A DNA stretch of 64,000 bases, taken from IMG/VR virus record IMGVR_UViG_3300044997_001199, positions 151,331 to 215,330 of that record; one strand, given 5' to 3'. Below the pieces are notes generated by a model. It ran no database searches, was not told where the DNA came from, and worked only from the letters and a program-made list of their open reading frames with translations. The position numbers were made by a program, and so were the translations under genes. This document shows, in pieces, positions 188-61,626 of the stretch (the first letter of the stretch is position 1; every line of letters starts with the position of its first letter).

Positions 188-412
188 TCAATACAGGGTT
201 TTAGGCAATTCTTGGCTAGCCAAATATCTACGCCAACGAGATTTGGCCGCGGATTTTTTGCGTTTTCTCACCGAAGTGGGTTTTTCGTAGAACTCATATT
301 TCCTGAGATCCATGAGTATGCCCGAAGTCTGGACCTTTTTTTTGAATTTACGCAGTGCTTTTTCAACGTTTCCGTCGTTGACAAACACTCTGCGACCATT
401 TAATTCACTCAT
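188..412 (-). CDS. rpsU: Ribosomal protein bS21
   Basis: V.V.DGNVEKALRKFKKKV..GIL..LR..EFYEKPT..RKRKK.AA..R, typical S21 pattern, 74 aa. Confidence 0.92.
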   Translation of the reverse strand: MSELNGRRVFVNDGNVEKALRKFKKKVQTSGILMDLRKYEFYEKPTSVRKRKKSAAKSRWRRYLASQELPKTLY

Positions 413-1613
413 TTACTTTTTTTAACTCCTTGGGTTCATACACCATGTCGGCGTCAATAACGACTTCGGTAATACCTTGCCGCACGTATTCTCGCAGTCG
501 ATACATGTGCGGTATTAGCACTCGCTCGAGTTCTCCGTGCAAGCCACGTGCTCCTGTTTTGTTTTTCATGGCATGCTCTACCACGAGATCCAGTGCCGCG
601 GATGTGAATTCTAACTTGATCTGGTCTTGGTCAAACAGCCATTGATACTGTTCTATATAGTTATTTTTGATGTTGAGCAGTATGGCCAAAAGATCCTGTT
701 TGGTTAGTTCTCTCAAAGACACCCAGGTGGGGAATCTGCCTACAAATTCGGGGATCATGCCAAACTTTACAATGTCATCAGGAGTGGTACTGTCAAGATA
801 CACACTGGGATCCTGTTCCACTGGAACGCTGAATCCAATACTGGTTCCCTTGATTCGAGATTTCACGAGATTTTCGATGCCTACAAACGCACCGCCGGCG
901 ATAAACAAGATATCAGTGGTGTCGATTTCCACGGTGTCGTTCTGAGGATTCTTGCGACCCCCGTGAGGTACGATTCTGCACTTGGTACCCTCCACCAATT
1001 TGAGAAGGCTTTGCTGTACACCCTCACCTGACACATCGCGAGTGATACTGATATTCTCCCCTCTGCGGGCTATTTTGTCTATTTCGTCAATAAAAACGAT
1101 TCCGGTCTGGCAGCGCTCGATGTCATAATCGGCTGCTGCGTACAACCGCGAAATCACGCTTTCTACGTCATCGCCTACATAACCGGCTTCGGTCAGACTG
1201 GTGGCATCTGCGATCACAAAAGGCACACCCAGGTACCGAGCCACTGTGCGCGCCAGCAGGGTTTTGCCCGATCCCGTGGGTCCCAGCATCAGTATGTTGA
1301 CTTTTTCAATTTCCGTGTTTTTTTCTTGATTGCGTATGCGCTTGTAGTGATTGGCAATGGCCACACTGAGAACGATTTTTGCGTCTTGCTGACCAATCAC
1401 ATACTGGTCGAGAAACTGTTTGATCTCCATTGGGTCCACATGCGATTCAATCATGGTCTGGCCCTGGGCTTGGTTAGATAACAGCAGTGTGTCACACAGA
1501 GTCACGCACTCGTTGCATATGGCAACCTTGTCTCCCACAATGAGTTTTCCGACTGCGTCCTTGTGCTTGCCACAAAAACTACAGTCGTTGGGTGTGAGAT
1601 CAGTATCTGTCAT
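405..1613 (-). CDS. clpX: ClpX AAA+ unfoldase
   Basis: N-terminal C4 zinc finger (CSFCGK..ICNECV), Walker [30 protein letters not shown] loop, GARGL. Confidence 0.95.
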
Positions 1614-3091
1614 TGATTGTGCTTGCCAAGTCGATTGGAAATTTGTTCGGTTTCCGCTGCAGTGAGGAAGTCAGGATCATACTGACCCTGTTCCAACTGT
1701 TGGATAAGATGGTCGATATAGGCATCGTTGTATGTATAACTATCGGCGATCTGCTTGCTGATTTCGATCCAGTCGTTTTCATTGTATCGATAGAGAACGT
1801 GCGGGATCCGATCGGTACGTATCCATAGATCGCCCTTGACTGCATGTTCGGGGAATCGGTTTCCGAATCCAGTGCCAAGAGTCGGTTCCGGCAAGTCATC
1901 AGTGACCAGCGACATCCATGGCAGTTGATCGATTAGACCTTGTTCATATCGATGGCGTTGGTCCTTGAGAGTTCTTCCGGGATTGGCCTGTTTCCAGAGA
2001 CGCATGGCTTCTTTGACTTTGTTGTCGTGGTGACCGAACTCGTCGTCGGCAGACTCAGCATCGTCCAGTAAACGATCCATTGGGTGTTCGTGCTCCACAA
2101 TAACCAATGTTTCCTGGGTCTGGTTCTCTGTGTCCGCCGTGGTCTCAGGAACATAGACTATCGGGCCCACTGGATCAACTCCGGGTACATGATGTTTCCA
2201 TTCTTTTTGGAGGTAATCATGCGTGACTGTTTGTTCGATCGATGAATCTTGAGCAGTTTCTTGTGGGCTCGGGTCTGCAGACTCTGCTAGGTCCGACACA
2301 GCGGCGTCGAGAGACTGCGATTGAGTCAGTTGTCGTTCACGTTCCCATCCATGGCTTTCGGTGAACGCCAACAACATCATTATGGCCAGGGGATCAAATA
2401 CCATAACCAAGACTATGATCACCCATCGCACTGCTTTTTCCAGGACATTCACTTCAGGGTTGTCACCATAGACCAGAGCAGCAATATATTTGATTGGGCC
2501 GACTTCGGCTTCTACTTTTCTCAATTCACTGGCTATGGGAGCACGCTGTTCATTGAGGTCAGCGATTATCGACTGTGCCTGGGCAATTTCTCGTTGCAGT
2601 CTTACACGCTCGGCTTGTTGTTGTCTGCGTATCTGCACTGCACGTTCTGCACCGCGATCATCATTGCTGCGACTCAGACGTTCGTTGACCTGGCTGTCCA
2701 TCTGTTGAACAGAGGTCTTGGCCGCAGCAATGTTATCCTGTTGGGTGCGTATTTTTTCGTCAATCAGATCGACCTGGGCAGCAACGTCGCCGGTGGGTAC
2801 TGCCTGGTCCAGATGTGCCTTTGACAAAAATCCAAAAATACCCATGGATGTTATGATCATGAGTAGGATCACTGCTGGTACTAGATAGGCTTTCATGGTC
2901 CATCGCACACGATGCCAGTACTCATGTAGCCAGACCGTGATTGCGAGTTTGGCTATTTCTAAAATGGTGCCCATGACCGCTATGGGCACTGTGGCCGCGG
3001 CAAATATAGCCGTGAGACCGGCTATGGAGTAAAAGGCTGCGATACCGCTGAGGCTCAGGGCCACGGCCAGGACAATATATGTTAGAAACAT
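1610..3091 (-). CDS. Multi-pass membrane protein with coiled coil
   Basis: Three N-terminal hydrophobic helices, a long Q/E/A-rich coiled coil, a fourth TM (VIIVLVMVFDPLAI) and an acidic C-terminal half; TAAATA upstream. Confidence 0.7.
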   Translation of the reverse strand: MFLTYIVLAVALSLSGIAAFYSIAGLTAIFAAATVPIAVMGTILEIAKLAITVWLHEYWHRVRWTMKAYLVPAVILLMIITSMGIFGFLSKAHLDQAVPTGDVAAQVDLIDEKIRTQQDNIAAAKTSVQQMDSQVNERLSRSNDDRGAERAVQIRRQQQAERVRLQREIAQAQSIIADLNEQRAPIASELRKVEAEVGPIKYIAALVYGDNPEVNVLEKAVRWVIIVLVMVFDPLAIMMLLAFTESHGWERERQLTQSQSLDAAVSDLAESADPSPQETAQDSSIEQTVTHDYLQKEWKHHVPGVDPVGPIVYVPETTADTENQTQETLVIVEHEHPMDRLLDDAESADDEFGHHDNKVKEAMRLWKQANPGRTLKDQRHRYEQGLIDQLPWMSLVTDDLPEPTLGTGFGNRFPEHAVKGDLWIRTDRIPHVLYRYNENDWIEISKQIADSYTYNDAYIDHLIQQLEQGQYDPDFLTAAETEQISNRLGKHNQ

Positions 3092-41292: not shown

Positions 41293-41501
41293 CACAGACA
41301 CTCGGGTTTGACCACAATCCAGCACGGTCCCAGTTTGTTGGCACGGATCAATTCAACCGCACAATATGCGGCTGATTTGCCAGTCCACGATCCCAGTTCG
41401 ACCCAGGTACCGCCGACGGGAAAGTTTTCTATGACCAGATCGAACATCACGGTGTTGCGATGAGACATGAATCCTGTTATATTGTGAAAAAAGTGTTCCA
41501 T
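41292..41501 (-). pseudogene. Truncated methyltransferase (N-terminal part only)
   Basis: MEHFFHNITGF..WVELGSWTGKSA, stops after 69 aa before the rest of the Rossmann fold. Confidence 0.65.
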
Positions 41502-41541
41502 GACTTTATATTTACCATTATCTGCTCCGATAAATATTTGT

Positions 41542-42312
41542 ATGAACAAGACCATAGTTTTAATCACTGGTGGATTTGATCCTGTGCACTCAGGGCACAT
41601 CGCTTATATCAATGCAGCACGAAAACTAGGCGATGTGCTGGTAGTGGGTGTGAACTCAGACGCTTGGCTGTCTCGCAAAAAAGGCCGAGCATTCATGCCT
41701 GAATTCGAACGTTGTACTGTGGTCCGATCCATAGTAGGCGTGGACTTTGTGATTACCTTTGATGATTCCGATGGATCGGCACGCGATGCTATACGCAAGG
41801 TGCGAGACAGTTATCCAGGAGATCGCATTGTTTTCGCCAATGGCGGTGATCGAACTGCTGTGAACATACCCGAGATGGACCTGCAGGACCCTGGACTGGA
41901 ATTCCAATTTGGCGTGGGCGGAGCTCACAAAGCCAACTCATCATCCTGGATACTGGAAGAATGGAAAGCACCCAAAACTCAACGGACCTGGGGATACTAC
42001 CGTGTGCTGTACGAATATGAGGCCGAGGTCAAGCTCAAAGAATTGATAGTGGACCCCGGCCAGCGGCTCAGCATGCAACGCCATCGAGATCGCTCCGAAC
42101 ATTGGTTCGTGGCCCAGGGTACTGCCACGGTGTATACTATCAATCGGTCAACCGATGCTGAAATACTGGGGATCTACCAGGCCCACCAACACGTACACAT
42201 TTCTCGTGCCCAGTGGCACCAATTGGTCAATGAAACTGATCAACCGTTGAAACTTATTGAAATCCAGTACGGTACCAATTGTGTGGAAGAAGACATAGAG
42301 AGACGTACTTGA
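41542..42312 (+). CDS. Cytidylyltransferase-like (HxGH) domain fused to mannose-6-phosphate-isomerase-type cupin
   Basis: GGFDPVHSGH, FANGGDR, NSSS; R.WG.Y, LSMQRH..RSEHW, IEIQ.G....EDIER. Confidence 0.88.
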   Translation: MNKTIVLITGGFDPVHSGHIAYINAARKLGDVLVVGVNSDAWLSRKKGRAFMPEFERCTVVRSIVGVDFVITFDDSDGSARDAIRKVRDSYPGDRIVFANGGDRTAVNIPEMDLQDPGLEFQFGVGGAHKANSSSWILEEWKAPKTQRTWGYYRVLYEYEAEVKLKELIVDPGQRLSMQRHRDRSEHWFVAQGTATVYTINRSTDAEILGIYQAHQHVHISRAQWHQLVNETDQPLKLIEIQYGTNCVEEDIERRT

Positions 42313-49244: not shown

Positions 49245-49320
49245 CTGCCTGTAGCTCAGCCGGAAGAGCAATGGACTTAAAATCCATCCAGTACGGGCTC
49301 GAATCCCGCCACTCGCACCA
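49245..49320 (+). pseudogene. Chimeric tRNA: Arg 5' portion + Leu(TAA) anticodon arm and 3' half
   Basis: 5' CTGCCTG cannot pair with 3' CACTCGC; ATGGA-CTTAAAA-TCCAT anticodon arm; ACCA end. Confidence 0.8.
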
Positions 49321-49357
49321 TATCATAAATAGTGTTGTAGTAACACTCGGAGTAAAC

Positions 49358-49831
49358 ATGCTTAAACTTAATATTGAAGAAGTTAAAGCATTTATAGATT
49401 CACAAAGCAAAGAAACAAGAATTTATATCGGGTGCGACTCTGAACGCTTTAGACACAATAACGTATGGTGGGCCGAGTATACTGTGGCAGTGGTGATCCA
49501 TATGGATGGGCGTCACGGCTGTAGGATTTTTGGCGAAGTTACCCGAGAAAGAGACTATGACCAACGCAGAGATCGACCCAGCATGCGTCTCATGAACGAA
49601 GTTCACAAGGCTAGCGAGATGTTTCAGCGTCTGGCGCTGGTGCTAGCGGATCGTCCAGTGGAAGTACATCTTGACATCAATCCCAACGAGATCCACGGAT
49701 CTAACTGTATAATCCAGCAGGCCATTGGCTACATACGAGGTACATGCAATGTGATTCCCATGATCAAACCTCGGGCATTTGCTGCCAGCTATGCGGCAGA
49801 TCGGCTCAAATCTCTACGTTTATCAGCTTGA
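49358..49831 (+). CDS. RNase H-like YkuK (DUF458) family protein
   Basis: IYIGCDS, RLMNEV, EVHLDIN, IKP.AFAASYAAD. Confidence 0.85.
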   Translation: MLKLNIEEVKAFIDSQSKETRIYIGCDSERFRHNNVWWAEYTVAVVIHMDGRHGCRIFGEVTRERDYDQRRDRPSMRLMNEVHKASEMFQRLALVLADRPVEVHLDINPNEIHGSNCIIQQAIGYIRGTCNVIPMIKPRAFAASYAADRLKSLRLSA

Positions 49832-49867
49832 TCGTGGTTGTGTTGCATTGACCTACTGAATATTGCA

Positions 49868-50134
49868 ATGCAACAAAAAACTTTTCTCATCGTAATAAGA
49901 CGTACCGGGCGAGACGAAGTTTTCCGCCCCAGTGACTGGGCCGAACGTCTTTGCAACATGATCACAGTGTTTGACCATGGCAACAAATTGGTGGCCAGTT
50001 ACCGACGAAGAATGGGCGTATCTCAATCAACAGTCACTGCCTGTGCCAAAATCATTGACTACAAATTGTTATCAATGTACTATTTGACTTTACAACAAGC
50101 ATCAGAGGATACCAATGTCTCGTATTACCAGTGA
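49868..50134 (+). CDS. DUF3579-like protein (C-terminus may be degenerate)
   Basis: FRPSDWAERLC signature. Confidence 0.65.
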   Translation: MQQKTFLIVIRRTGRDEVFRPSDWAERLCNMITVFDHGNKLVASYRRRMGVSQSTVTACAKIIDYKLLSMYYLTLQQASEDTNVSYYQ

Positions 50135-50342
50135 ACTTGCAGTAAATGCAATAGGCAGTCGTTATGATTTGGTGCTGATCGCATCGCGCAGGGCAAGAGA
50201 ACTGCGCCGGGGCTGGACACCCAAGGTAAAAAGCCCGTATGGACCCTTGGTAGTGGCGCTGGCCGAAATTGAAAAAGGTGTAGTCGGGCGGGAGTACCTC
50301 AACAAGCCGGCCAATATCGGTCGTCACGAAACCCCTGAATGA
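50115..50342 (+). CDS. rpoZ: RNA polymerase omega subunit
   Basis: MSRITSE.A...IGSRYDLVLIASRRAREL..G..P, P.V.AL.EI..G. Confidence 0.88.
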   Translation: MSRITSELAVNAIGSRYDLVLIASRRARELRRGWTPKVKSPYGPLVVALAEIEKGVVGREYLNKPANIGRHETPE

Positions 50343-51169
50343 TCAATCAGATTCACGGTCGACCAATCGTGATGTTTTATCCACCGTTTGGAGGTGCCAA
50401 GTTCATTACCAACTGCTTGGCTTTGAGCAAATATTGTGTGCACATTGATCGCGGAGCCATGCAGCATCTCATGCAAAATCCGTCGGACTATAAGTACCGA
50501 CAGCAGCTTAGCCTGAGTACGATACCGCAGGGCTCTGAGATAGAATCCGCGAGACTCGGAGCCACATGGCGTGATCAATATGAACTCAACGACAGTTCGA
50601 TTTTTGGTCGCAGTGGGCTAGAACCAGGTAAAACATATGATTGGTGGTTGGTACAACAGGTACTCAGACAACAACTCGATTTCTTTCTGATCGCGCACTG
50701 GCTTCCGAGATTACAAGAGCTGTTGAGTTATTTTCCTCAATCACGAATCGTGAGATTGGTGAACTTTGAAAAATTCTGGAACATAGCGCAAAAATTCAAA
50801 GCCTGTGTTGAACTCAATCCACCGTGGCATGAATGCATTGTTCACAACGATCAATCTCGTGTTTACCAACAACTTCAAGGACCCGATTGGCCCAGTTGGG
50901 AACTCTTCGAATCATACGGATACGACATTGTTGAATTGTCTCGATATCACCCAGTCGACCAGCCCATTGTCGAGGAAATCAAAAGTTTTTACCCATGGTA
51001 TCAACTTGCTCAACCGTTGACTGTATTTGATGTAGATAACACTATTTTTTTCCGACAAAAATTTATATACAAAATGTACGACCTATATCAATGGCTGTGT
51101 TATAATGACTTTGATCCAAAAACCATTGGTATCATGTGGGACCGATATGCAGAGTTTCACGATTTTTAG
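50339..51169 (+). CDS. Hypothetical protein, sulfotransferase-like family; paralog of 31406..32281
   Basis: MFYPPFGGAKFITNCLALS; LQGPDWPSW. Confidence 0.5.
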   Translation: MINQIHGRPIVMFYPPFGGAKFITNCLALSKYCVHIDRGAMQHLMQNPSDYKYRQQLSLSTIPQGSEIESARLGATWRDQYELNDSSIFGRSGLEPGKTYDWWLVQQVLRQQLDFFLIAHWLPRLQELLSYFPQSRIVRLVNFEKFWNIAQKFKACVELNPPWHECIVHNDQSRVYQQLQGPDWPSWELFESYGYDIVELSRYHPVDQPIVEEIKSFYPWYQLAQPLTVFDVDNTIFFRQKFIYKMYDLYQWLCYNDFDPKTIGIMWDRYAEFHDF

Positions 51170-51179
51170 AACTAGATTT

Positions 51180-51254
51180 GCGGGTATGGTGTAGTGGTTG
51201 CGCCCTGACCTTCCAAGCTAGAGAGGATGGGTTCGATTCACACTACCCGTTCCA
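51180..51254 (+). tRNA. tRNA-Gly(TCC), possibly degenerate
   Basis: GCGGGTA/TACCCGT, CTTCCAA loop, GTTCGATT, TCCA end; mismatches in anticodon and T stems. Confidence 0.75.
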
Positions 51255-51276
51255 ACTTTTAATGTTAAGGAATACC

Positions 51277-51513
51277 ATGATCAGAACCAGTACAATTTGT
51301 TACGATCCTTCCAATTTCGATCATCGTCATGATTTTTATCGTTTACTAAAATCTGGAACATTTACTTGGTGCAAAAACCGCTATGCACTGAAAGGACAGT
51401 ATGGTGATGTACTGAACATGATGTTAGACCTCACTGTGCGATATTATGCAGAGCAAGAATTTGGTCCGCTGGAATCGGTTAACATCGATACACCAAATAA
51501 AGTAATGACATGA
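51277..51513 (+). CDS. Hypothetical protein
   Basis: AAGGA SD, coupled to the next gene. Confidence 0.55.
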   Translation: MIRTSTICYDPSNFDHRHDFYRLLKSGTFTWCKNRYALKGQYGDVLNMMLDLTVRYYAEQEFGPLESVNIDTPNKVMT

Positions 51514-51908
51514 CCAAGATTTTTGTCAATGGCACATTCGATGTGCTGCATCTAGGACATCTGGCTCTGTTGGAATATGCGCACAGTCTAGGCACTGTGA
51601 TGGTTGCCATTGACAGCGATGCCAGGATCAAACAATTGAAAGGTGCCCAAAGACCTGTAAATACTCTGGTAGAACGCATTACCATGCTAGAGGCCCTGCG
51701 TTGTGTAGACAGTGTGCGCGTATTTGATACCGATCAAGATCTGATCGACATAATACGTGCGTATCAACCCAACATCATGGTCAAAGGCTCTGACTATCAA
51801 GGACGTAACATCATTGGCGCCGAACACTGTGACCACATAGACTTTTTTCCGAGACTCGATGATTACTCAACCACTAAAAAAATTCAAAATATTGCTCATA
51901 GGCGATGA
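51510..51908 (+). CDS. Heptose-1-phosphate nucleotidyltransferase-like (HldE domain II / HldC)
   Basis: NGTFDVLHLGH, DSD..IKQLKG..RPVN, VKGSDY, YSTT. Confidence 0.85.
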   Translation: MTKIFVNGTFDVLHLGHLALLEYAHSLGTVMVAIDSDARIKQLKGAQRPVNTLVERITMLEALRCVDSVRVFDTDQDLIDIIRAYQPNIMVKGSDYQGRNIIGAEHCDHIDFFPRLDDYSTTKKIQNIAHRR

Positions 51909-52629
51909 TTGTGTAGACATCTATCGCTATGGTACGGTGAATCGACTGTGCCCCGAGGCTCCTGTGCCAATTTTTGAACCCAGCCACGACGAAACTCGAC
52001 CTGGCATGGCCAACAATGTGGCACAGAACTTTCTAAGCCTGGGGTGCGAGGTCACTACTATGCTGGGCGATGCCAGCACAAAGATACGCCTCATTGATAT
52101 CCGCAGCGGTCAACAGGTCTTGCGTCTAGACCAGAATGTTCAATCGTCTCCGATCAAACTGCACTGTCGTATACCTCAGACTTTTGATGCCGTGGTTATT
52201 TCAGACTACAACAAAGGCGCCGTGGATCATCGTCTCATACGAGAGATACGCAAAGAATTTGTTGGTCCGGTATTCATCGATACCAAGAAGTCCGAGTTGG
52301 CCAAATTCAACGGATGCATTTTAAAAATCAACGAACGCGAGTTCAACGATCGCAAAAGCATATGCGATCAATTGATCGTAACTCTAGGCGATCGTGGTGC
52401 AAGGTATCACGATCACGGCACCATCACTGATTTTGCTCCGCATCGAGTGGAAGTGAGCGATGTGTGCGGAGCCGGTGACACCTTCCTGGCTGCCTTGGTC
52501 TACCAATACCTTGTTACCGGAGAAATCGCCCAGGCCATTGAATTTGCGATGTCTGCTGCGGCAGTCACTGTACAACATCTAGGCGTGTATGCGCCCACAC
52601 TGGAGGAAATTAATGCGATTTCGTGGTGA
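51859..52629 (+). CDS. Heptose-7-phosphate kinase-like PfkB (HldE domain I / HldA)
   Basis: LIGD..VD.Y.YG.V.RLCPEAPVP, ISDYNKG, DVCGAGDTF. Confidence 0.88.
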   Translation: MITQPLKKFKILLIGDDCVDIYRYGTVNRLCPEAPVPIFEPSHDETRPGMANNVAQNFLSLGCEVTTMLGDASTKIRLIDIRSGQQVLRLDQNVQSSPIKLHCRIPQTFDAVVISDYNKGAVDHRLIREIRKEFVGPVFIDTKKSELAKFNGCILKINEREFNDRKSICDQLIVTLGDRGARYHDHGTITDFAPHRVEVSDVCGAGDTFLAALVYQYLVTGEIAQAIEFAMSAAAVTVQHLGVYAPTLEEINAISW

Positions 52630-52990
52630 AGTCATCAAAGGATGGGGGTCGGAGAAGATCTGGGTCACCAACGATCTCTACTGCGGTAAATTCATGACAT
52701 TCCACAGTGGCGCAAAATTCAGCATGCATTTTCATGCACACAAAGACGAGACATGGTATGTGATGTCTGGTAGATTCACTGTGCGCACTATCAATACCCG
52801 GGATGCTTCGCATCACACCCGGGAGCTTGGTACAGGGGATGTGTGGCACAATCCGCCCTTGTTGCCGCACCAGTTGATTTGTCACGAAGCTGGCACCATT
52901 ATCGAAGTCAGCACCGCTGATTCTGTAGAAGACAACTATCGCGTGGAGGCCGGGGACAGCCAGAAATACCACTGTAATGATTACACATGA
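52613..52990 (+). CDS. Cupin sugar isomerase/epimerase
   Basis: KGWG.E, FSMHFH..KDETWYV, PHQL, EVST.D...DNYR. Confidence 0.8.
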   Translation: MRFRGEVIKGWGSEKIWVTNDLYCGKFMTFHSGAKFSMHFHAHKDETWYVMSGRFTVRTINTRDASHHTRELGTGDVWHNPPLLPHQLICHEAGTIIEVSTADSVEDNYRVEAGDSQKYHCNDYT

Positions 52991-53069
52991 AAAACCATAT
53001 CACAAAGAAATACTGGCAATGGTTGCCCGACCTTGTCTGGAGTGATTTGTTGTTGCACATTCCGCCTGC

Positions 53070-53366
53070 ATGAAGTTGATTCCGTGGTCGCAATGGCTGG
53101 ATGAACACATACCCCACTACGAGGCAGAACGTCACAGATCGAGATTTCTGGACAATCCTCCCGCAGTGATTTTGATTGTACAGCCGCGAGACCGAGTTGC
53201 GGCTGATCGAACGCCCAGACTCCGGGGTTGGGAAGAGTATGTTACTGATGTCAAGTTCATGAATCATGGTGCAGTGCCCTTGTTTTTAGAAAATGATGCA
53301 CACCAAGAATGGTACTGGGCGTTCTGGGATGCCAACGAGGCTTTGGTTGCCGTCATGAAGTTATAG
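53070..53366 (+). CDS. Hypothetical protein
   Basis: 98 aa; C-terminal F.D..EA...MKL motif. Confidence 0.55.
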   Translation: MKLIPWSQWLDEHIPHYEAERHRSRFLDNPPAVILIVQPRDRVAADRTPRLRGWEEYVTDVKFMNHGAVPLFLENDAHQEWYWAFWDANEALVAVMKL

Positions 53367-53422
53367 GCATGTATTTCATAATTTGATGTAGTGATTTTGC
53401 GATGATTTTGCCTTATACTCAC

Positions 53423-53462
53423 TATAAGTACTTCAAGCAACAACTGTTGCTCGGTGCTTGAA
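53423..53462 (+). promoter_or_regulatory. Late-promoter variant TATAAGTA and 5' UTR hairpin of pqqA
   Basis: TATAAGTA at 53423-53430; TTCAAGCA/TGCTTGAA stem 53432-53462. Confidence 0.5.
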
Positions 53463-53487
53463 ATCTTTTATCAAAGGAAACACAACC

Positions 53488-53559
53488 ATGTGGTCCAAAC
53501 CTGCTGCCGCTGATCTGCGCTTTGGTTTTGAAGTCACCATGTACATCGCTGCTCGCTGA
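53488..53559 (+). CDS. pqqA: PQQ precursor peptide PqqA (23 aa)
   Basis: Hand translation MWSKPAAADLRFGFEVTMYIAAR with the E-x-x-x-Y core; AAAGGA SD; absent from the ORF track because of size. Confidence 0.93.
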   Translation: MWSKPAAADLRFGFEVTMYIAAR

Positions 53560-53584
53560 TTTTTGCCGGCAATGTATGTTCAAC

Positions 53585-53613
53585 AAAAAAGGACCCCTGC
53601 GGGGGTCCTTTTT
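53585..53613. terminator. Bidirectional rho-independent terminator
   Basis: AAAAAA-GGACCCC-TGCG-GGGGTCC-TTTTT. Confidence 0.9.
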
Positions 53614-53624
53614 GTGATTAAAGA

Positions 53625-53653
53625 TTGACCACAAACCCAACCTTGCATACAAT
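53625..53653 (+). promoter_or_regulatory. Sigma70-type early promoter for the MoxR-like ATPase
   Basis: TTGACC-N17-TACAAT. Confidence 0.65.
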
Positions 53654-53685
53654 ACAAACACTAACAACTAACCAGGAGCTTGTAC

Positions 53686-54780
53686 ATGAGTTATGTCAGC
53701 GAAAATCGTACTGTTACCAGTGTGCAGGCTCGCAAAAGTTTGTTGACTGCATTCCGAGTCCAACGCCCGGTGTTTCTTTGGGGCCCCCCGGGCATTGGCA
53801 AGAGCGAATTGGTCGCAGGTATTACACAGGAGCTAGGCGGGCTGATGATCGACCTGCGTCTGGGACAGATGGAACCCACAGACATCCGTGGTATTCCATT
53901 CTACAACAAAGAAACTGGTCGCATGGACTGGGCGCCGCCCGTCGATCTGCCCGATGCAGAACTGGCCAGCCAATATCCCATTGTTGTTCTGTTCATGGAC
54001 GAAATGAACTCAGCGCCGGCTTCGGTGCAGGCCTCAGCATATCAGCTGACCTTGAATCGCTGCGTGTGTCGCTATCATCTGCCACGCAATGTGGTCATCG
54101 TGGCAGCAGGCAATCGTGAGTCAGACAAAGGTGTGACCTTCCGCATGCCCACGCCATTGGCCAATCGTTTTGTGCACATCGAAATGCGTGTGGACTTTGA
54201 ATCCTGGCATGCCTGGGCTGTGACCAACAACGTGCACAAGGATGTGGTAGGCTACATTACCTTTGCCAAGCAAGATCTCTATGACTTTGATAGCAAGAGC
54301 TCCAGTCGAGCATTTGCCACTCCGCGGTCTTGGACCTTTGTGAGCCAACTGATCAGCGACGACACTGTGGATGAGGACACTGCGACCAATCTCGTGGCCG
54401 GTACCGTGGGCGAGGGCCTGGCCGTGAAGTTCATGGCTCACCGCAAAATTGCCAGCCGTATGCCGCAGCCCATTGACATTCTCCGGGGCAAGGTCAAGGA
54501 CCTCGAAGTCAAGGAAGTGTCGGCCATGTACAGCCTGGTCACGTCCATGTGTTACGAACTGCGAGACGCTGTACAAAACAAAGTGTCCGACAAGGAATTC
54601 CACGAGATGGCTGACAACTTCTTTGGCTACATGATGAAGAACTTTGAGACCGAACTGGTAGTCATGGGTGCACGTATCGCACTGACCACATTCAACCTGC
54701 CGTTCCAGCCCGCCAAGCTCAAAAATTTCGACGAGTTTCACCAACGCTATGGCAAGTACATTCTGCAGGCCAACAGCTAA
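53686..54780 (+). CDS. MoxR-like AAA+ ATPase
   Basis: WGPPGIGKS, DIRGIP, LFMDEMN, AAGNR, PLANRF, TPRSW. Confidence 0.88.
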   Translation: MSYVSENRTVTSVQARKSLLTAFRVQRPVFLWGPPGIGKSELVAGITQELGGLMIDLRLGQMEPTDIRGIPFYNKETGRMDWAPPVDLPDAELASQYPIVVLFMDEMNSAPASVQASAYQLTLNRCVCRYHLPRNVVIVAAGNRESDKGVTFRMPTPLANRFVHIEMRVDFESWHAWAVTNNVHKDVVGYITFAKQDLYDFDSKSSSRAFATPRSWTFVSQLISDDTVDEDTATNLVAGTVGEGLAVKFMAHRKIASRMPQPIDILRGKVKDLEVKEVSAMYSLVTSMCYELRDAVQNKVSDKEFHEMADNFFGYMMKNFETELVVMGARIALTTFNLPFQPAKLKNFDEFHQRYGKYILQANS

Positions 54781-54811
54781 CTTCAACCCGGACCCTTCGG
54801 CGCCCTTTTTT

Positions 54812-55048
54812 ATGACAGAAAAACACTGGGTGCGCAAGAGCTGGAGTCATTACAACGTTGCCGAAATCCAGCAGTTGCATCGCCGTATCCAACAGGATCT
54901 GGGCTGGCTCAATCGTCACTGGGGTTTCCAGATACGGGCGCAAGATCCCATGGATCAACTGATAAATCAACTGGACAATCCTGTGATCATAGATTATTGG
55001 TTTCTAGATCCGCGCACTGCGACCTTGTTTGCTCTTAAATACCCGTGA
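54812..55048 (+). CDS. Hypothetical protein
   Basis: C-terminal WFLDPRTATLFALKY. Confidence 0.55.
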   Translation: MTEKHWVRKSWSHYNVAEIQQLHRRIQQDLGWLNRHWGFQIRAQDPMDQLINQLDNPVIIDYWFLDPRTATLFALKYP

Positions 55049-55434
55049 TCATGCGATACAAAATACAACGACTAGACGGGCGCTATAGCTATCGCAGATG
55101 GTTTCAATACTACATCGGCTTCCGCTCCAGCATGAATCAGGATCACGGGCCCATGCAGTTTACTCAAGCACAACAATGGTTTTCAGACACCTATGGTTGG
55201 AGCGCCGAAATACGTCAATGGGCCGACATCCATCGCTGGACTGCCATGAGACTACAGAGCTTGCATCAACCCTGGCAGACCGAAGACCGAGTGCTAGAAA
55301 ACCTTCCTGCTGTGTGCAATCGACACTGGTCCTGGACCAACAGAGCCACTGATCTTCGTATCTATGTAGCATCAGATCGCGAACTGGCGTTTTTCCAACT
55401 GGCACATTCTGTTGACCAAAAAAACCGTACCTAA
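55045..55434 (+). CDS. Hypothetical protein
   Basis: Trp-rich; C-terminal RIYV.SD.ELAFFQL. Confidence 0.55.
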   Translation: MIMRYKIQRLDGRYSYRRWFQYYIGFRSSMNQDHGPMQFTQAQQWFSDTYGWSAEIRQWADIHRWTAMRLQSLHQPWQTEDRVLENLPAVCNRHWSWTNRATDLRIYVASDRELAFFQLAHSVDQKNRT

Positions 55435-55462
55435 CACAATAGCATTGTCAACGGAGGCTCAC

Positions 55463-56731
55463 ATGACCACTGCCACAAATACCACCAACAAAGACGATGC
55501 CAAGCGATTCGCCACCCTCATCGGGCCCACCGATTCCAGGGTCGATGCTCAGGCCCGTGAGAGCTTGGTCACTGCCCGGGTAGGCATGTTGCTGCGAGCC
55601 AGTTTCTTTGGCAATCTTGCCACACGCCTGCGCCTGATCAATGCTGATGAATGGTGCGCCACTGCTGCCACCGACGGTCGCAATTTTTACTACAACAGTC
55701 GTTTCATCATGATGCTGCGCCCGCGAGAGATTGAATTCTTAGTTGGGCATGAAGTGTTGCACTGCATCTATGATCACTTTGGGCGGCGCAACGATCGCGA
55801 CCCGCAACTGTGGGGTATTGCCTGTGACTATTGTGTCAATGCTGATCTCAAAAAGCACCGTGTGGGTGAATTCATTACTTCGGTACCCTGTCTGTACGAC
55901 AGCAAGTACGAAGACATGAGTTCCGAAGAAATCTATGATCAACTCTACAAAAATGCCAACAAGATCAACATCAACGATCTTATTGACTGCATGATCGACA
56001 AACACATGGACGGCAATGACAGTGATGACGAGCAGAATGGCAAGGCGCCCAGCACCTTGACTGCCGAAGAACGTGCCAAGATCCGTGACGAAATCAAAGA
56101 AGCCATGTTGGCTGCTGCTGCCACAACCGACGGCGCCGCCGGTAACCTGCCCGCTGGTGTGCGTCGCATAATCCAGCAAATAACCGAGCCGCGTCTGAAC
56201 TGGCGAGAAATGATCCGTATGAACATCGAAAGCACGGTCAAGAGTGACTTTACCTGGCTGCGATCCAACCGTCGTGGTTGGCACATGGACGCCGTGATGC
56301 CCGGCATGAAGAATGACGAAATGGTCGACGTGGTGATCATGATCGATGCGTCTGGTTCCATGAACAATGATACCTTGCGTGACTGCCTGGGAGAAGTCCA
56401 AAACATCATGGAGTCATTTCCGTCGTTCCGCATCCACATCGCTGCTTTTGATACCCAGGTATACAATCCGGTGGACTATACATCAGACAACCTTGACAAC
56501 ATCTGCGATTACGAAATCTCGGGCGGCGGCGGCACTGACTTTGATGTCATGTACGATTATCTGCGAAAAAATGATATCCAGCCCAAACGCATGATTGTGT
56601 TCACAGACGGCTATCCCTTTGGTTCGTGGGGCGACGAAAACTATTGCGATGTGACCTGGGTGCTGCATGGAACCACCAGCATTGTTCCGCCTTGGGGCTC
56701 CTATGCCTACTTCGAGGACGAGAAAAAGTAA
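55463..56731 (+). CDS. Metallopeptidase (HExxH) + VWA domain protein (DUF2201-like)
   Basis: TAATDG, HEVLH, DASGS MIDAS, GGGGTDF, FTDGY; TTGACC-N17-CACAAT upstream. Confidence 0.88.
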   Translation: MTTATNTTNKDDAKRFATLIGPTDSRVDAQARESLVTARVGMLLRASFFGNLATRLRLINADEWCATAATDGRNFYYNSRFIMMLRPREIEFLVGHEVLHCIYDHFGRRNDRDPQLWGIACDYCVNADLKKHRVGEFITSVPCLYDSKYEDMSSEEIYDQLYKNANKININDLIDCMIDKHMDGNDSDDEQNGKAPSTLTAEERAKIRDEIKEAMLAAAATTDGAAGNLPAGVRRIIQQITEPRLNWREMIRMNIESTVKSDFTWLRSNRRGWHMDAVMPGMKNDEMVDVVIMIDASGSMNNDTLRDCLGEVQNIMESFPSFRIHIAAFDTQVYNPVDYTSDNLDNICDYEISGGGGTDFDVMYDYLRKNDIQPKRMIVFTDGYPFGSWGDENYCDVTWVLHGTTSIVPPWGSYAYFEDEKK

Positions 56732-56770
56732 AAAAATATCAGCCTAGGTTGGTTGTGAGTAAATATTTTT

Positions 56771-56971
56771 ATGGAAAACACACAACTGACCGTGGCCGAT
56801 ATGGCCTCAATCAAAAATATCATCGAAGCAGCATGCACACGCGGTGCATTTCGTGCTGCCGAAATGAGCAACATCGGTGAAATCTACAACAAGGTGTCGG
56901 CATTTGTAGATCAAGCAATGTCACAGTTGCAGCAAGCTCAAGCACCGAAACAAGGAGATCAAAATGCTTAA
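56771..56971 (+). CDS. Hypothetical protein
   Basis: IIEAACTRGAFRAAEM..IG..YNK; TAAATA at 56760-56765. Confidence 0.65.
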   Translation: MENTQLTVADMASIKNIIEAACTRGAFRAAEMSNIGEIYNKVSAFVDQAMSQLQQAQAPKQGDQNA

Positions 56972-57689
56972 ACACATCGGACGCCACGGCGATCGCAAGG
57001 TCGCTATCGTGTTTCGTGAAATCCCAGGCGAAGATCATATGTGCCTGGTAATTTATCCCGAAGTATTGCCTAGTCATATTCATGATTGCATTATGAAAGT
57101 GTTGGAAAGCCCAGCCGCTCAAGCCGAAACTGTGCTGGCCAATGCGCTTCACAGAAATCTTCTGCCCGATGGTCGCGTGATACTGGAGGCATTGCACCGC
57201 GAAGGCATGCTGAAGAAAATAGCGGCCAATCAAGTGATCGTGACTCCCAATGCTACCAGCAGTGTCAAGCTGGACGAACTCAACCGACTGGTAAGGGAAA
57301 TGGAATCAGGGTCTGATGCTGCTCGCAGGCTAGCAGAACTCGACGCCAATGCTGGCATCGTGGATCCCAAGACCAAGCGCCGTGCCGAAGCCGAATTTAA
57401 ATCGAGACAGCAACAGTCCGCAGCCGTGACCGCAGATTCCAACTCGGCGCTGGATGACAAAACACTGGCAGCCAACATGCTGGCTCAGGCCAAGCGCATG
57501 GAGGTCGAAGCCAAAGGGCTCATTGCCGAGGCTGCTCGCATGAAAAAAGATGCCGAACGTATGTTCCCCGGAGTGAATGTCGATGGAGCCACAGTGGAAT
57601 CTGCTGCCACTGTAGAATCTGCTGCCACAGACACTGCACCCAAGGCACGTGGACGGAACAAAACGGTGACTTCAGATGTCGTTCAGTGA
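56964..57689 (+). CDS. Hypothetical protein
   Basis: AAGGAG SD, MLKHIGRH start, coiled-coil C-terminal half. Confidence 0.65.
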   Translation: MLKHIGRHGDRKVAIVFREIPGEDHMCLVIYPEVLPSHIHDCIMKVLESPAAQAETVLANALHRNLLPDGRVILEALHREGMLKKIAANQVIVTPNATSSVKLDELNRLVREMESGSDAARRLAELDANAGIVDPKTKRRAEAEFKSRQQQSAAVTADSNSALDDKTLAANMLAQAKRMEVEAKGLIAEAARMKKDAERMFPGVNVDGATVESAATVESAATDTAPKARGRNKTVTSDVVQ

Positions 57690-57978
57690 TGAGTTTTTGA
57701 ACAAGTGGGAACACATCATCAATGGTGTAGATGTCACTGAGGTTCCACTCGAATGCATCAAAAAAATTGTTATCGGGTTGCAGGGCGGTAGACGTCGCAC
57801 AGTGAATCTGCAACGGTTACGTGCACGAGGGCTGGACTATGATGCCATCGAAACTGTGCTGGAGCGCACCTTGTCTGAGCTGGGCGAGGACGTGCGAGGC
57901 ACGGAGTTCATAGTAGATGTGGAAGCAGTGGCTACCATTGTGCAGATCGAAACAGACAAAATTCTCAACGGTCTATGA
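57676..57978 (+). CDS. Hypothetical protein
   Basis: 100 aa, coupled to thyX. Confidence 0.6.
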   Translation: MSFSDEFLNKWEHIINGVDVTEVPLECIKKIVIGLQGGRRRTVNLQRLRARGLDYDAIETVLERTLSELGEDVRGTEFIVDVEAVATIVQIETDKILNGL

Positions 57979-58646
57979 AAGTTAAACTGATCAGTTTTTC
58001 GCAACCCGATGCAGAATTCGCTTTGCAGGGTATCACGGATGCGCAAGAACTCATTGCCTTCTGTGCTCGAGTATCCAATCCTGCCAATCAGTTCAATACC
58101 GACACCAGTCAACGGTTGATTCGCTACCTGATAGATCACAAGCATTGGTCTCCCCTGGAAATGGTATCTGCTTGTCTGGAGATTACCACCACTCGAGACA
58201 TTGCGCGGCAAATCTTGCGACATCGTAGTTTTAGTTTTCAGGAGTTCAGCCAACGCTATGCAGATCCCACGCAAGATCTACAGTTTGAAATTCGCGAAGC
58301 TCGGCTACAGGATGCCACCAATCGTCAGAATTCCATAGAAACCTCCAACCATCTGTTGCAAGAAAACTGGGCCTTGCATCAGCAAGAAATCATTGATCTT
58401 GCTCTTGAAAAATATCAATGGGCTGTGCGTTCGGGCATCGCCAAGGAACAAGCACGTGCTGTGTTGCCCGAAGGACTCACTGTGAGCCGATTGTACATGA
58501 ACGGAACGCTGAGATCGTGGATACATTTTATTGAACTGCGATCGGGACATGGCACACAGAAAGAACATCAGGCCGTGGCTCTGGCCTGTGCCGATGTGAT
58601 ATCGTCGATATTTCCAATGACAAAAGATTTTGTCTTTGTATCGTGA
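57975..58646 (+). CDS. thyX: FAD-dependent thymidylate synthase
   Basis: HWSPLE, QILRHRSFSFQEFSQRY, EQARAVLP, TQKEH. Confidence 0.95.
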   Translation: MKVKLISFSQPDAEFALQGITDAQELIAFCARVSNPANQFNTDTSQRLIRYLIDHKHWSPLEMVSACLEITTTRDIARQILRHRSFSFQEFSQRYADPTQDLQFEIREARLQDATNRQNSIETSNHLLQENWALHQQEIIDLALEKYQWAVRSGIAKEQARAVLPEGLTVSRLYMNGTLRSWIHFIELRSGHGTQKEHQAVALACADVISSIFPMTKDFVFVS

Positions 58647-58653
58647 GATCATT

Positions 58654-58809
58654 GTGTCTGTAGAACAACTCAAAGCTGCGCTGGCAAAAAAACAACAAAA
58701 ACAGAACCCCCGCGGTTCCAGGTCTGACTCTCTTGATTCTGCTTCTGCTCCGCGCAGTCAAGTGTCAGTGAAGAAACCCTCCAAGAAATCCGCCGGCCGC
58801 GGACGATGA
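58654..58809 (+). CDS. 51-aa basic protein
   Basis: GTG start; MSVEQLKAALAKKQQK...KKPSKKSAGRGR; stop overlaps the next ATG. Confidence 0.55.
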   Translation: MSVEQLKAALAKKQQKQNPRGSRSDSLDSASAPRSQVSVKKPSKKSAGRGR

Positions 58810-59771
58810 ATGTTCTAGTCACCGGCGGCCTGGGATTCATCGGGCACCAGGTAGTAAAGCGCCTCATGCGTCGAGGTGATGACACCGTGATCATGGACAC
58901 GCAAACTGATTATGGTATCATACCCCACAGCGAACTGCAATATCTCATGGGCGAAAGATTGAAAAAAATCAACAACCATCCAGTGATTCACGCAGACATC
59001 TCTGCTGGGGGCCCAGTTGACTACGCCATTGCTCGTGATCAGCCTGAAGTCATAATACATTGCGCCAGCGTTCCAAGGCAAAAAGTAGTCAACGCCAACC
59101 CTGTCTGGGGTGCAGATGTCATGATACGGGGTTTGATCAATCTTCTTGAGAGTGCCAAAAAACATCAAGTACGCAGATTTGTGTACGTGAGTTCTAGCAT
59201 GGTTTATGGTGACTTTAAAGATCAGGTTACCGAGGAGTCTCCTTGTAACCCACAAGGCCAATATGGCATCATGAAACTTGCTGGCGAATGGTTGGTCAAA
59301 GACTATGCTTGTCGTTACGGCTTTGAATATGTTATCATTCGTCCCAGTGCGGTGTACGGTCCTTTGGATGTAGAAGATCGAGTTGTAGCCAAATTCATGA
59401 TTGCAGCCATGCATAATGGAACACTCAAGGTCAATGGTGCCGAAGAAACTTTAGATTTTACCTATGTTGATGATGCAGCCGATGGTATTGTGGCGTCTGC
59501 AACGTTACCACAGGCTGCTAATAATACTTTCAATATCACAAAAAGCCATGGTGTTACTTTACGTCGAGCAGCCATGATGATTGTAAGTATTGTAGGTTCT
59601 GGCAATGTTGAATGTCGAGATCGAGATCTCGACTTCCCTAGTAGAGGTGCATTAAATATAGACAAAGCTCGTGACCTCCTGGGTTATAATCCTAAAATTG
59701 ATGTTGAAGAAGGATTTCAGAATTATTACAAGTGGTTGAGAGAGTCAACATATTGGAATGTGCATGATTAA
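58806..59771 (+). CDS. NAD-dependent nucleotide-sugar epimerase/dehydratase
   Basis: VTGGLGFIG, SSSMVYG, YGIMK, DFTYVDD. Confidence 0.92.
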   Translation: MNVLVTGGLGFIGHQVVKRLMRRGDDTVIMDTQTDYGIIPHSELQYLMGERLKKINNHPVIHADISAGGPVDYAIARDQPEVIIHCASVPRQKVVNANPVWGADVMIRGLINLLESAKKHQVRRFVYVSSSMVYGDFKDQVTEESPCNPQGQYGIMKLAGEWLVKDYACRYGFEYVIIRPSAVYGPLDVEDRVVAKFMIAAMHNGTLKVNGAEETLDFTYVDDAADGIVASATLPQAANNTFNITKSHGVTLRRAAMMIVSIVGSGNVECRDRDLDFPSRGALNIDKARDLLGYNPKIDVEEGFQNYYKWLRESTYWNVHD

Positions 59772-59874
59772 CTCAAATTTTGGATTTACTCCACTAAAAG
59801 AAGTTTGGTTAGGAGATTGTTATCCTGAATCTTTTTACAACCATCTGCCAAACAAATCTGTTAGTGCATGCTGA
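59764..59874 (+). pseudogene. N-terminal remnant of an amidinotransferase-like gene
   Basis: MINSNFGFTPLKEVWLGDCYPESFY resembles the amidinotransferase N-terminal PL.EV..G pattern; stops after 36 aa. Confidence 0.45.
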
Positions 59875-60535
59875 CCCCGGTGCACGTAGTGGATTCATTG
59901 CCGCATGGTTAACCAATCAGTTGACTGATTCAACAGTTGATGTTAGTAAGAAGTTGAATCCAATCTTTTGTAAAATACACAAACTGGATGATGTTAATAT
60001 TGTTAAAAACTTTTTAGGTACAAAAATAAGAATTCGTCCCGAGATAGAATCCATTGATCTACATTCGCTTTTATTTTTAAGAAAAAATGTTTACTCACAA
60101 ATTCCAAATTTTACTCGCGACGAGTATTCGCTAGAAACTTTTACAAAAATAGCATGCTTTGCTCGAGAGATATCTGAATGGGACCAGGTTCTGGACAACA
60201 ATTTATATGATTTTGTATTAAACTTTAGTGATACGTTTAATAACGACCTTATGATTGAATTATATAAAAAAGTTATAGGCATTGACCCATCTAGTTCTAT
60301 GATTGTTAATTTGATTGAAACTAACAAAATAAACAACATATCTATAAACCACAATCATGCTTGTTCAATTTTAAAATTATGTCTTTCTCAAGAAAACAAA
60401 TTAAATCTTAAAGAACAAAATAGATTCTGGAGCATAGTAGATGTATATGCTAGAACATCAGTTGATAAACTTTATGAAACAGTTTATGATTCTATCAAGC
60501 TAGAAAATTACGATCCATTGGCATGCAAGGTTTAA
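59864..60535 (+). CDS. Hypothetical AT-rich protein, sulfotransferase-like N-terminus, 5' end possibly clipped
   Basis: HADPGARSGFIAAWL; GTG start without a clear SD. Confidence 0.5.
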   Translation: MHADPGARSGFIAAWLTNQLTDSTVDVSKKLNPIFCKIHKLDDVNIVKNFLGTKIRIRPEIESIDLHSLLFLRKNVYSQIPNFTRDEYSLETFTKIACFAREISEWDQVLDNNLYDFVLNFSDTFNNDLMIELYKKVIGIDPSSSMIVNLIETNKINNISINHNHACSILKLCLSQENKLNLKEQNRFWSIVDVYARTSVDKLYETVYDSIKLENYDPLACKV

Positions 60536-61626
60536 CGATCCCATTTACCGGTCTTCGACGACAATATAATAGCCTTCGTCAGGAGATATTAGATGCCACC
60601 GACGAAGTTCTTCGTAGTGGCATACTCATGAATGGCAATAACACTGCCGAGTTTGAGCATTGGCTGAAAAAGAAAAACAATGTAAGTTATGCTGTGACCT
60701 GTCACAGTGGAACCGTGGCTTTAGAAATTATTGCAAGATATCATTACCAACAACAATTACCAAAACCACCAACTGTATTAATTCCCAGTATGACTTATGT
60801 GGCCACCGCCAATGCATTTGCCAATGCAGGTTGGGATATTCAATTTATTGATGTTGATTCTTATGGCATCCTTGATTACAAACAAATTCCCGAATTTCTC
60901 ATTTACCAAGCCGTGGTAATTATCGGGATGTATGGTGCCAGTGTTACACATTTTGGTAATACAAAATTTTGGACCCAGCGAGAAAAACAAGGAACCATTG
61001 TTATTGAAGATGCCGCACAACATTGGTTGGCTGCTGATTGTCAGAGAATTGGAAATGCAGCAGCCATTAGTTTTGATCCAATGAAGAATTTAGCCTGTTA
61101 CGGGAATGGCGGCGCGGTTTTAACCAACGATCGAAATCTCTACGAATTTGCTGTTAGTTGGAGAGATAACGGAAAGTTGTCACAGCACTTGTATAACGGA
61201 TCAAATGTCAGAATGAGTGAGTTAGATTGTGCACACATGTTGGTCAAAACAAATCATGTCAGCAAATGGCAATCTCGAAGAGAAAATATTGCAAATTTTT
61301 GGATGGAATCTCTTAAAGATTTCCCTGTTCGTTGTCTAACTGACAGGAGTAATGCTCATGATCATGCTTACCACAAGTTTGTTATTGACATTGATCAACG
61401 CGATCAAATCAAAAAAGAACTTGCTAATCGTAAAATTGAAACTCGGGTACATTATGAACGACCTTTACACGAACTTGATGGTGTGTTTAGACAATACCCC
61501 GGTCCGGGGTTGTTAGCTACATCTAGCTCGCTGAGTCGCAGAGTACTGAGTTTGCCGATCTATCCCGAACTCACTGATCTTGAAGTGGAATATATCATTG
61601 ATCGGGTACGAGATTGCGCTTCATGA
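60523..61626 (+). CDS. DegT/DnrJ/EryC1/StrS PLP sugar aminotransferase
   Basis: SGTVAL, TYVATANA, IEDAAQ, SFDPMKNL..GNGG, LSLPIYP. Confidence 0.92.
   Translation: MQGLTIPFTGLRRQYNSLRQEILDATDEVLRSGILMNGNNTAEFEHWLKKKNNVSYAVTCHSGTVALEIIARYHYQQQLPKPPTVLIPSMTYVATANAFANAGWDIQFIDVDSYGILDYKQIPEFLIYQAVVIIGMYGASVTHFGNTKFWTQREKQGTIVIEDAAQHWLAADCQRIGNAAAISFDPMKNLACYGNGGAVLTNDRNLYEFAVSWRDNGKLSQHLYNGSNVRMSELDCAHMLVKTNHVSKWQSRRENIANFWMESLKDFPVRCLTDRSNAHDHAYHKFVIDIDQRDQIKKELANRKIETRVHYERPLHELDGVFRQYPGPGLLATSSSLSRRVLSLPIYPELTDLEVEYIIDRVRDCAS

Follow-up and report, generated by a model that had tools for sequence, protein, structure and literature searches.

A jumbo phage of roughly 350 kb, represented by an uncultivated IMG/VR virus record, carries its own well-conserved copy of omega, the smallest subunit of bacterial RNA polymerase. 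The copy belongs to a large phage-only family and has changed two of the omega residues implicated in binding the starvation signal ppGpp. The gene lies at 50115-50342 (+) of the 64,000-nucleotide stretch analysed here (the window), which spans bases 151331-215330, the last 64 kb, of a 215,330-bp record rated 61% complete by CheckV. It encodes 75 aa beginning MSRIT (the coordinates include the stop codon), and a Shine-Dalgarno sequence, AGAGGA, is found at 50104-50109 (+), 5 nt before the ATG. The protein matched PF01192 (RNA_pol_Rpb6) at 44.8 bits (cut-off 26, E 1.3e-11) and the rpoZ equivalog TIGR00690 at 42.7 bits (cut-off 23.6). Its best matches among solved structures were all omega chains (E 4e-10 to 1e-8). 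The initial annotation, which had described a phage-encoded omega overlapped by a DUF3579-like ORF, was thus correct in what it observed. Its interpretation, that exchange of Ala2 for Ser in a phage omega could alter the stringent-response sensitivity of host polymerase, was only partly supported.

The setting of the gene is a phage. The record carries ribonucleotide reductase, tail-spike-like, virion and helicase genes and six tRNA genes, together with ThyX, a MoxR-type AAA ATPase, a DUF2201/VWA protein and a block of sugar-nucleotide genes. A search with Rfam returned only tRNAs. One of these matches, at 49250-49311 (+), was partial (RF00005, 41.5 bits, model positions 6-65 of 71) and was not called by ARAGORN. 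It overlaps the 5' extension of the listed ORF 49271-49831, which contains the conserved upstream neighbour of omega, an RNaseH_like gene (PF04308/phrog_11311). The likely start of this gene is Met30 of the listed ORF, giving 49358-49831 (+). It is called as 155-165 aa in relatives and is conserved upstream of omega in contigs L010-L012 and L099-L103, with another copy within 6 kb upstream in L007 and about 3.8 kb from omega in L119 (G001:C1:122000-141999). The order RNaseH_like, omega, MoxR-type AAA ATPase, DUF2201 metallopeptidase/VWA protein and ThyX recurs across divergent members of this lineage, in full in the window (49358-58646) and L119 and partially in L007 and L014.

We next asked how widely this omega is distributed. 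A word search returned 98 protein clusters of 70-92 aa omegas, and a pattern scan of IMG/VR viral contigs found 477 stretches encoding relatives, the best 80 of which lie on contigs up to 365 kb. Three of these records have direct terminal repeats at 352-365 kb and eight are 91-100% complete, indicating that the lineage is made of jumbo phages of about 350 kb. Every context examined was phage-like, with tail-fibre Collar proteins, many tiny ORFs, RNaseH_like, MoxR and DUF2201. By contrast, a scan of one genome for each of 185,579 prokaryote species, using a single peptide pattern, gave only two hits, both on short contigs (7 and 23 kb) of Bacteroidota MAGs. One of those MAGs also carries its own native 114-aa omega, and the other has a second omega match in a 115-aa open frame that is probably its own. 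A third copy, in one of these two MAGs (Haliscomenobacter), lies on a 183-kb contig (C1) with the synteny of the window, and that contig is a mis-binned phage. No isolated phage in the INPHARED collection has this family at E <= 0.01. The only hits there were bacterial-type omegas (42-44% identity, 34% for one short unannotated record) in records that look like bacterial DNA, two of them titled Salmonella enterica.

Against sister contigs, synonymous sites were near saturation (pS about 0.7) whilst pN was 0.09-0.15, giving a dN/dS of 0.05-0.08 and indicating purifying selection. The exact protein was read on 7 contigs from several samples. Omega is a small and easily transferred gene, and a neighbouring gene is decaying, so a non-functional passenger or bacterial contamination of the contig was considered. 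The low dN/dS, the phage context and the conserved synteny across hundreds of phage contigs contradict both, and we regard this explanation as very unlikely.

The decaying neighbour is the DUF3579-like ORF at 49868-50134 (+), 88 aa from its ATG, which overlaps omega by 20 nt (50115-50134). It matched PF12112 at 35.6 bits (cut-off 25) but only over profile positions 9-48 of 90, and its match to PDB entry 2l9d covers residues 12-44 only. It is thus not a full-length domain. Sister contigs L103 and L104, whose omega is 87% identical, hold an intact 129-aa DUF3579 gene between RNaseH_like and omega, ending about 120 nt before omega. The window lacks about 260 nt of that gene, retaining roughly the first 38 codons, including the FRPSDWAERL motif, and then reading through the former intergenic spacer to a stop inside omega. 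In the next clade (L010-L013, omega 81-83% identical) DUF3579 is absent, and a word search found no relative of the ORF beyond its own record. A functional DUF3579-omega pair was therefore rejected, and the overlap is an accident of gene decay. Within the remnant, in another frame, a micro-ORF at 49977-50087 (+) beginning MATNWWPVTDEEWAYLN is conserved in L103 (MQTNWWPVTNEEWEYLN), with 4 synonymous and 4 non-synonymous changes in its frame against 1/7 and 3/6 in the other two frames. It may be a small gene or a conserved regulatory stretch, although the sample is too small to decide. In the clade without DUF3579, the 275-nt interval between RNaseH_like and omega instead holds a different 76-aa open frame (MLVDRHGFLYTASIPWP...; L010 3153-3383 and the equivalent spacer in L011-L013), conserved between contigs from different samples.

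Downstream, a 276-aa ORF at 50339-51169 (+) overlaps the omega stop codon with its ATG (ATGA). It had no Pfam, PHROG or NCBIfam hit and belongs to a virus-only cluster of hypothetical proteins, whose Atlas model (pLDDT 0.51) only weakly resembles sulfotransferases and guanylate-kinase-like P-loop folds (TM 0.45-0.57). A gene of like size (249-276 aa) follows omega only in close relatives, and tblastn found no sequence match in L010-L013. There was thus no support for a transcription partner, and the ORF is probably part of the downstream sugar-modification block. Sugar-nucleotide genes lie close to omega at 41500-42312, 51510-52990 and 58806-61626, including split HldE-like heptose kinase and adenylyltransferase domains, cupin/mannose-6-P-isomerase-like proteins, an NAD-dependent epimerase/dehydratase and a DegT-type aminotransferase. 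Close relatives add a glycosyltransferase and a radical SAM enzyme. This suggests glycan or DNA/virion sugar modification by the phage.

A sigma-70-like promoter candidate, TTGACT-17-TACTAT, lies at 50055-50083 (+), about 30 nt upstream of omega. Both hexamers and the 17-nt spacing recur in L103/L104 (TTGACT-17-TAGTAT) although the spacer letters differ. The consensus scan as a whole was not above chance (10 found, 8.2 expected), and the element is thus only suggestive.

To identify the origin of the gene, the protein was compared with named bacterial omegas. The nearest was that of Ralstonia solanacearum (Burkholderiales, 67 aa), at 48% identity and without gaps, the two sharing a G-(H/W)-T-P-K-V segment. 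E. coli omega is 42% identical and needs a two-residue gap. A tree on 77 columns did not resolve the donor, the beta/gamma-proteobacterial references forming one clade attached inside the phage radiation with no rooting possible. Weak hints point to a betaproteobacterial host: besides omega itself, bS21 is nearest to Burkholderia and DUF3579 to Neisseria, and relatives carry TctC and Porin_4 genes. All of these are drawn from a biased plasmid collection.

We then modelled the phage omega with E. coli beta' residues 330-940 and 1130-1407. The complex scored 0.77 in each of three runs, against 0.00 for the best of three controls, with a partner pLDDT of at least 76 and at least 95% of contacts agreeing between runs. 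This mark was reached by 51 of 78 solved complexes and 2 of 108 mismatched pairs. The predicted interface is the canonical omega site, pairing beta' 362, 364, 417-418, 474-488, 613-615, 618, 905, 910-912 and 1360-1364 with omega 3-10, 15-31 and 42-49. Omega residues 3-10 touch beta' 362, 364, 417-418, 613-615 and 618, which form the walls of ppGpp site 1. The model supports docking but does not show it, as the score may reflect memory of solved omega-beta' complexes and E. coli is not the host.

Some jumbo phages encode their own split beta/beta' polymerases (PMC12619734), and only 61% of this genome is in hand, raising the possibility that the protein serves a phage polymerase. However, no beta (Rpb2_6), beta' (Rpb1_2) or sigma-70 r2 or r4 Pfam match was found in the record. 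Among 24 related records, 8 of them near-complete (91-100%), there was no beta match over Pfam's cut-off (one 12.7-bit match in one record) and a single sigma r2 hit. These phages therefore appear to rely on host polymerase, although jumbo-phage polymerases are very divergent and Pfam models may miss them. Given also the closeness of the protein to proteobacterial omega and its predicted fit to E. coli beta', a phage-polymerase subunit is very unlikely.

The premise of the initial annotation, that the N-terminal MAR motif of proteobacterial omega forms part of ppGpp site 1 with beta', is correct (PMC7676912, PMC6416229). The phosphates of ppGpp are coordinated by omega residues 2-5 and by beta' R417 and K615, whilst the base is held by beta' I619, D622 and R362 (PMC7676912). 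MAR is treated as the binding motif (PMC6416229, PMC9638019), and the 5' and 3' phosphates face omega R3 and R52 (bioRxiv 10.1101/188680). All 7 proteobacterial references available for comparison have MAR and an Arg at the Arg52 position. The window copy has Met-Ser-Arg, retaining Arg3 and Thr5, and has Ala50 in place of the Arg52-equivalent (ALAEIE against ALREIE). Ala2 to Ser, stressed in the initial annotation, is not a hallmark. Of 161 unique phage omegas, 115 have Ala at position 2, the closest relatives at 81-87% identity have MAR, and Ser and Ala toggle by one base in two sub-lineages (TCT/GCC and TCA/GCA). By itself it is a conservative change. Ala50, which was missed, removes a charge and is a stronger reason to expect an altered site 1, although Lys54, one helical turn later, might partly replace the lost Arg.

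Across the 161 phage omegas, the positions invariant in the 7 references split into two groups. The structural positions stay near 100% (R26 161, R28 160, A48 160, E51 161, I52 156). The ppGpp-linked positions are among the least conserved (A2 115, R3 130), the Arg52-equivalent being Arg in 89, Lys in 16, Thr in 16, Gln in 9, Asn in 7, Ala in 6, Glu in 6 and others in 12. N-termini include MAR, MSR, MPR and extended forms. The window copy belongs to the minority lacking both the Ala2 and the Arg, but 74 of 161 members keep both MAR and the Arg, so loss of ppGpp contacts cannot be the function common to the family. By contrast, a phage-only signature is almost invariant (S6 155, Y17 140, D18 160, E29 161, E53 160, G58 148, R59 148, Y61 158, L62 157, K64 139), and the window copy carries every signature residue. 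Its S6, E29, E53 and G58-R59-x-Y61-L62-x-K64 elements are absent from the 7 references.

This pattern bears on two alternative roles. Omega is a beta' folding and assembly factor (PMC5811629, PMC7700224), and the phage protein might only keep beta' folded and host polymerase assembled while host gene expression declines during a long infection, with no change in regulation. The near-invariant core residues, the predicted canonical docking and the co-occurrence with bS21, another stoichiometric small subunit, fit this view. A pure supply gene would however be expected to stay host-like, whereas the family has its own signature whilst the ppGpp-linked positions drift, and no member was found in a bacterial setting on the single pattern scanned. 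We consider it possible but less likely. Alternatively, the conserved phage-specific surface, chiefly the C-terminal GR(D/E)YLxK motif at residues 58-64, may recruit a phage transcription factor to polymerases carrying phage omega, which would resemble the way the gene transfer agent activator GafA works through omega. The motif is variable in bacteria and, apart from L62, lies outside the predicted beta' interface. No conserved partner gene lies next to omega, however, the neighbours varying between clades (DUF3579, an unrelated 76-aa ORF, TctC, Metallophos), and the motif may instead touch parts of beta' or beta left out of the fold. A docking handle is thus doubtful.

Our preferred explanation, held with no more than even confidence, is that the gene encodes a working omega made by a phage with no detectable RNA polymerase of its own. 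It would probably be transcribed by host polymerase from its own sigma-70-like promoter, and the protein would dock on host beta' at the normal omega site, replacing or supplementing host omega and giving a phage-marked polymerase. With two residues implicated in site 1 changed, polymerase carrying this omega should bind or respond to ppGpp less well at site 1. In this view the function common to the family is occupation of the omega site with some phage-specific property, which could be tighter binding, a new contact or a docking surface, whilst ppGpp contacts are dispensable and in this phage probably weakened. Homology, phage context, breadth of the family and purifying selection are established by our analysis, docking and placement of the N-terminus at site 1 are model predictions, and incorporation into polymerase in the cell, exchange with host omega and a weakened ppGpp response are inferred. 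Replacement of host omega is plausible given the purifying selection, the predicted docking and the presence of bS21 in relatives. A site-1 change alone may matter little, since in E. coli loss of omega or of site 1 has mild effects because DksA-dependent site 2 compensates (PMC7676912, 10.1101/188680).

A second polymerase-directed gene in the same record encodes a TraR/DksA-type C4 zinc-finger protein (PF01258, 41.5-43.7 bits). It lies outside the window at G000:C1:46408-46512, in an ORF at 1495-1818 (-) of stretch L118 (G000:C1 about 46.4-46.7 kb), and is 107 aa from a GTG start or about 82 aa from an internal ATG. The pairing is suggestive for this phage but not general, as none of 24 other omega-bearing records has such a gene. 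No RelA_SpoT or MazG domain was found in the record. A bolder and rather unlikely reading, which remains compatible with the evidence, is that this lineage remodels host polymerase with its own omega so that phage transcription escapes the stringent response. In this phage both inputs would be cut, site 1 weakened by an omega lacking Ala2 and the Arg52-equivalent and site 2 blocked by a TraR-like protein occupying the DksA channel. The family would then be a natural series of site-1 variants, and a second example beside bS21 of phages replacing small exchangeable subunits of host machines.

Omega is the least understood subunit of bacterial RNA polymerase, and its clearest regulatory role is forming ppGpp site 1. 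Phages modify host polymerase with inhibitors, ADP-ribosylation, sigma factors and anti-sigma factors, but our literature searches found no report of a phage replacing a core-associated subunit and no paper on a phage-encoded omega, the candidate papers concerning host rpoZ or unrelated uses of the word omega. IMG's pipeline already labels some family members as omega, so the annotation exists in databases, but we found no study of the family. Its natural variation makes it possible to ask what omega does for transcription during infection, how much site 1 matters and whether exchange of small subunits is a general strategy of large phages.

Compared with bacterial RpoZ of the proteobacterial MAR type, the phage protein has the same fold family, length class, core residues and predicted docking site on beta'. 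It differs in its phage-only residues (S6 for V6, Y17-D18, E29 for Q, E53 for A and GR(D/E)YLxK), in S2 and A50 in this copy, and in its neighbourhood. The gmk-rpoZ-spoT setting seen in E. coli, Acinetobacter, Pseudomonas and Legionella is replaced by RNaseH_like, the DUF3579 remnant, the 276-aa viral ORF and tRNA-Gly. The isolated jumbo phages PA5oct, Sinorhizobium phage Phosso, Salicola phage SCTP-2, Vibrio phage 2.275.O and Agrobacterium phage Atu_ph07, all infecting Proteobacteria, share the DUF2201/VWA protein (34-43% identity) but none shows an omega at E <= 0.01. TraR/DksA-family regulators encoded by plasmids and phages are also small mobile-element proteins that reset the polymerase response normally governed by ppGpp, but they belong to an unrelated fold and act at the secondary channel, where DksA creates site 2 (10.1101/188680), and not at the beta'-omega interface. 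The parallel with bS21 drawn in the initial annotation also holds. Phage-encoded bS21 is reported in many cultivated and uncultivated phages and is thought to replace host bS21, and like omega it is a small, peripheral, exchangeable subunit of a host machine, although it acts on the ribosome. A 74-aa bS21 gene lies at 188-412 (-) of the window (PF01165, 64-65 bits), and bS21 occurs in 10 of 24 other omega-bearing records and in 6 of the 8 that are near-complete. Omega is thus a plausible second case, beside bS21, of a phage replacing such a subunit. Finally, in the Rhodobacter gene transfer agent, GafA controls RcGTA genes by direct contact with omega (PMC9638019), so that a virus-like element exploits omega as the control point on host polymerase. 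There the element encodes a factor that binds the host omega, whereas here the phage encodes omega itself.
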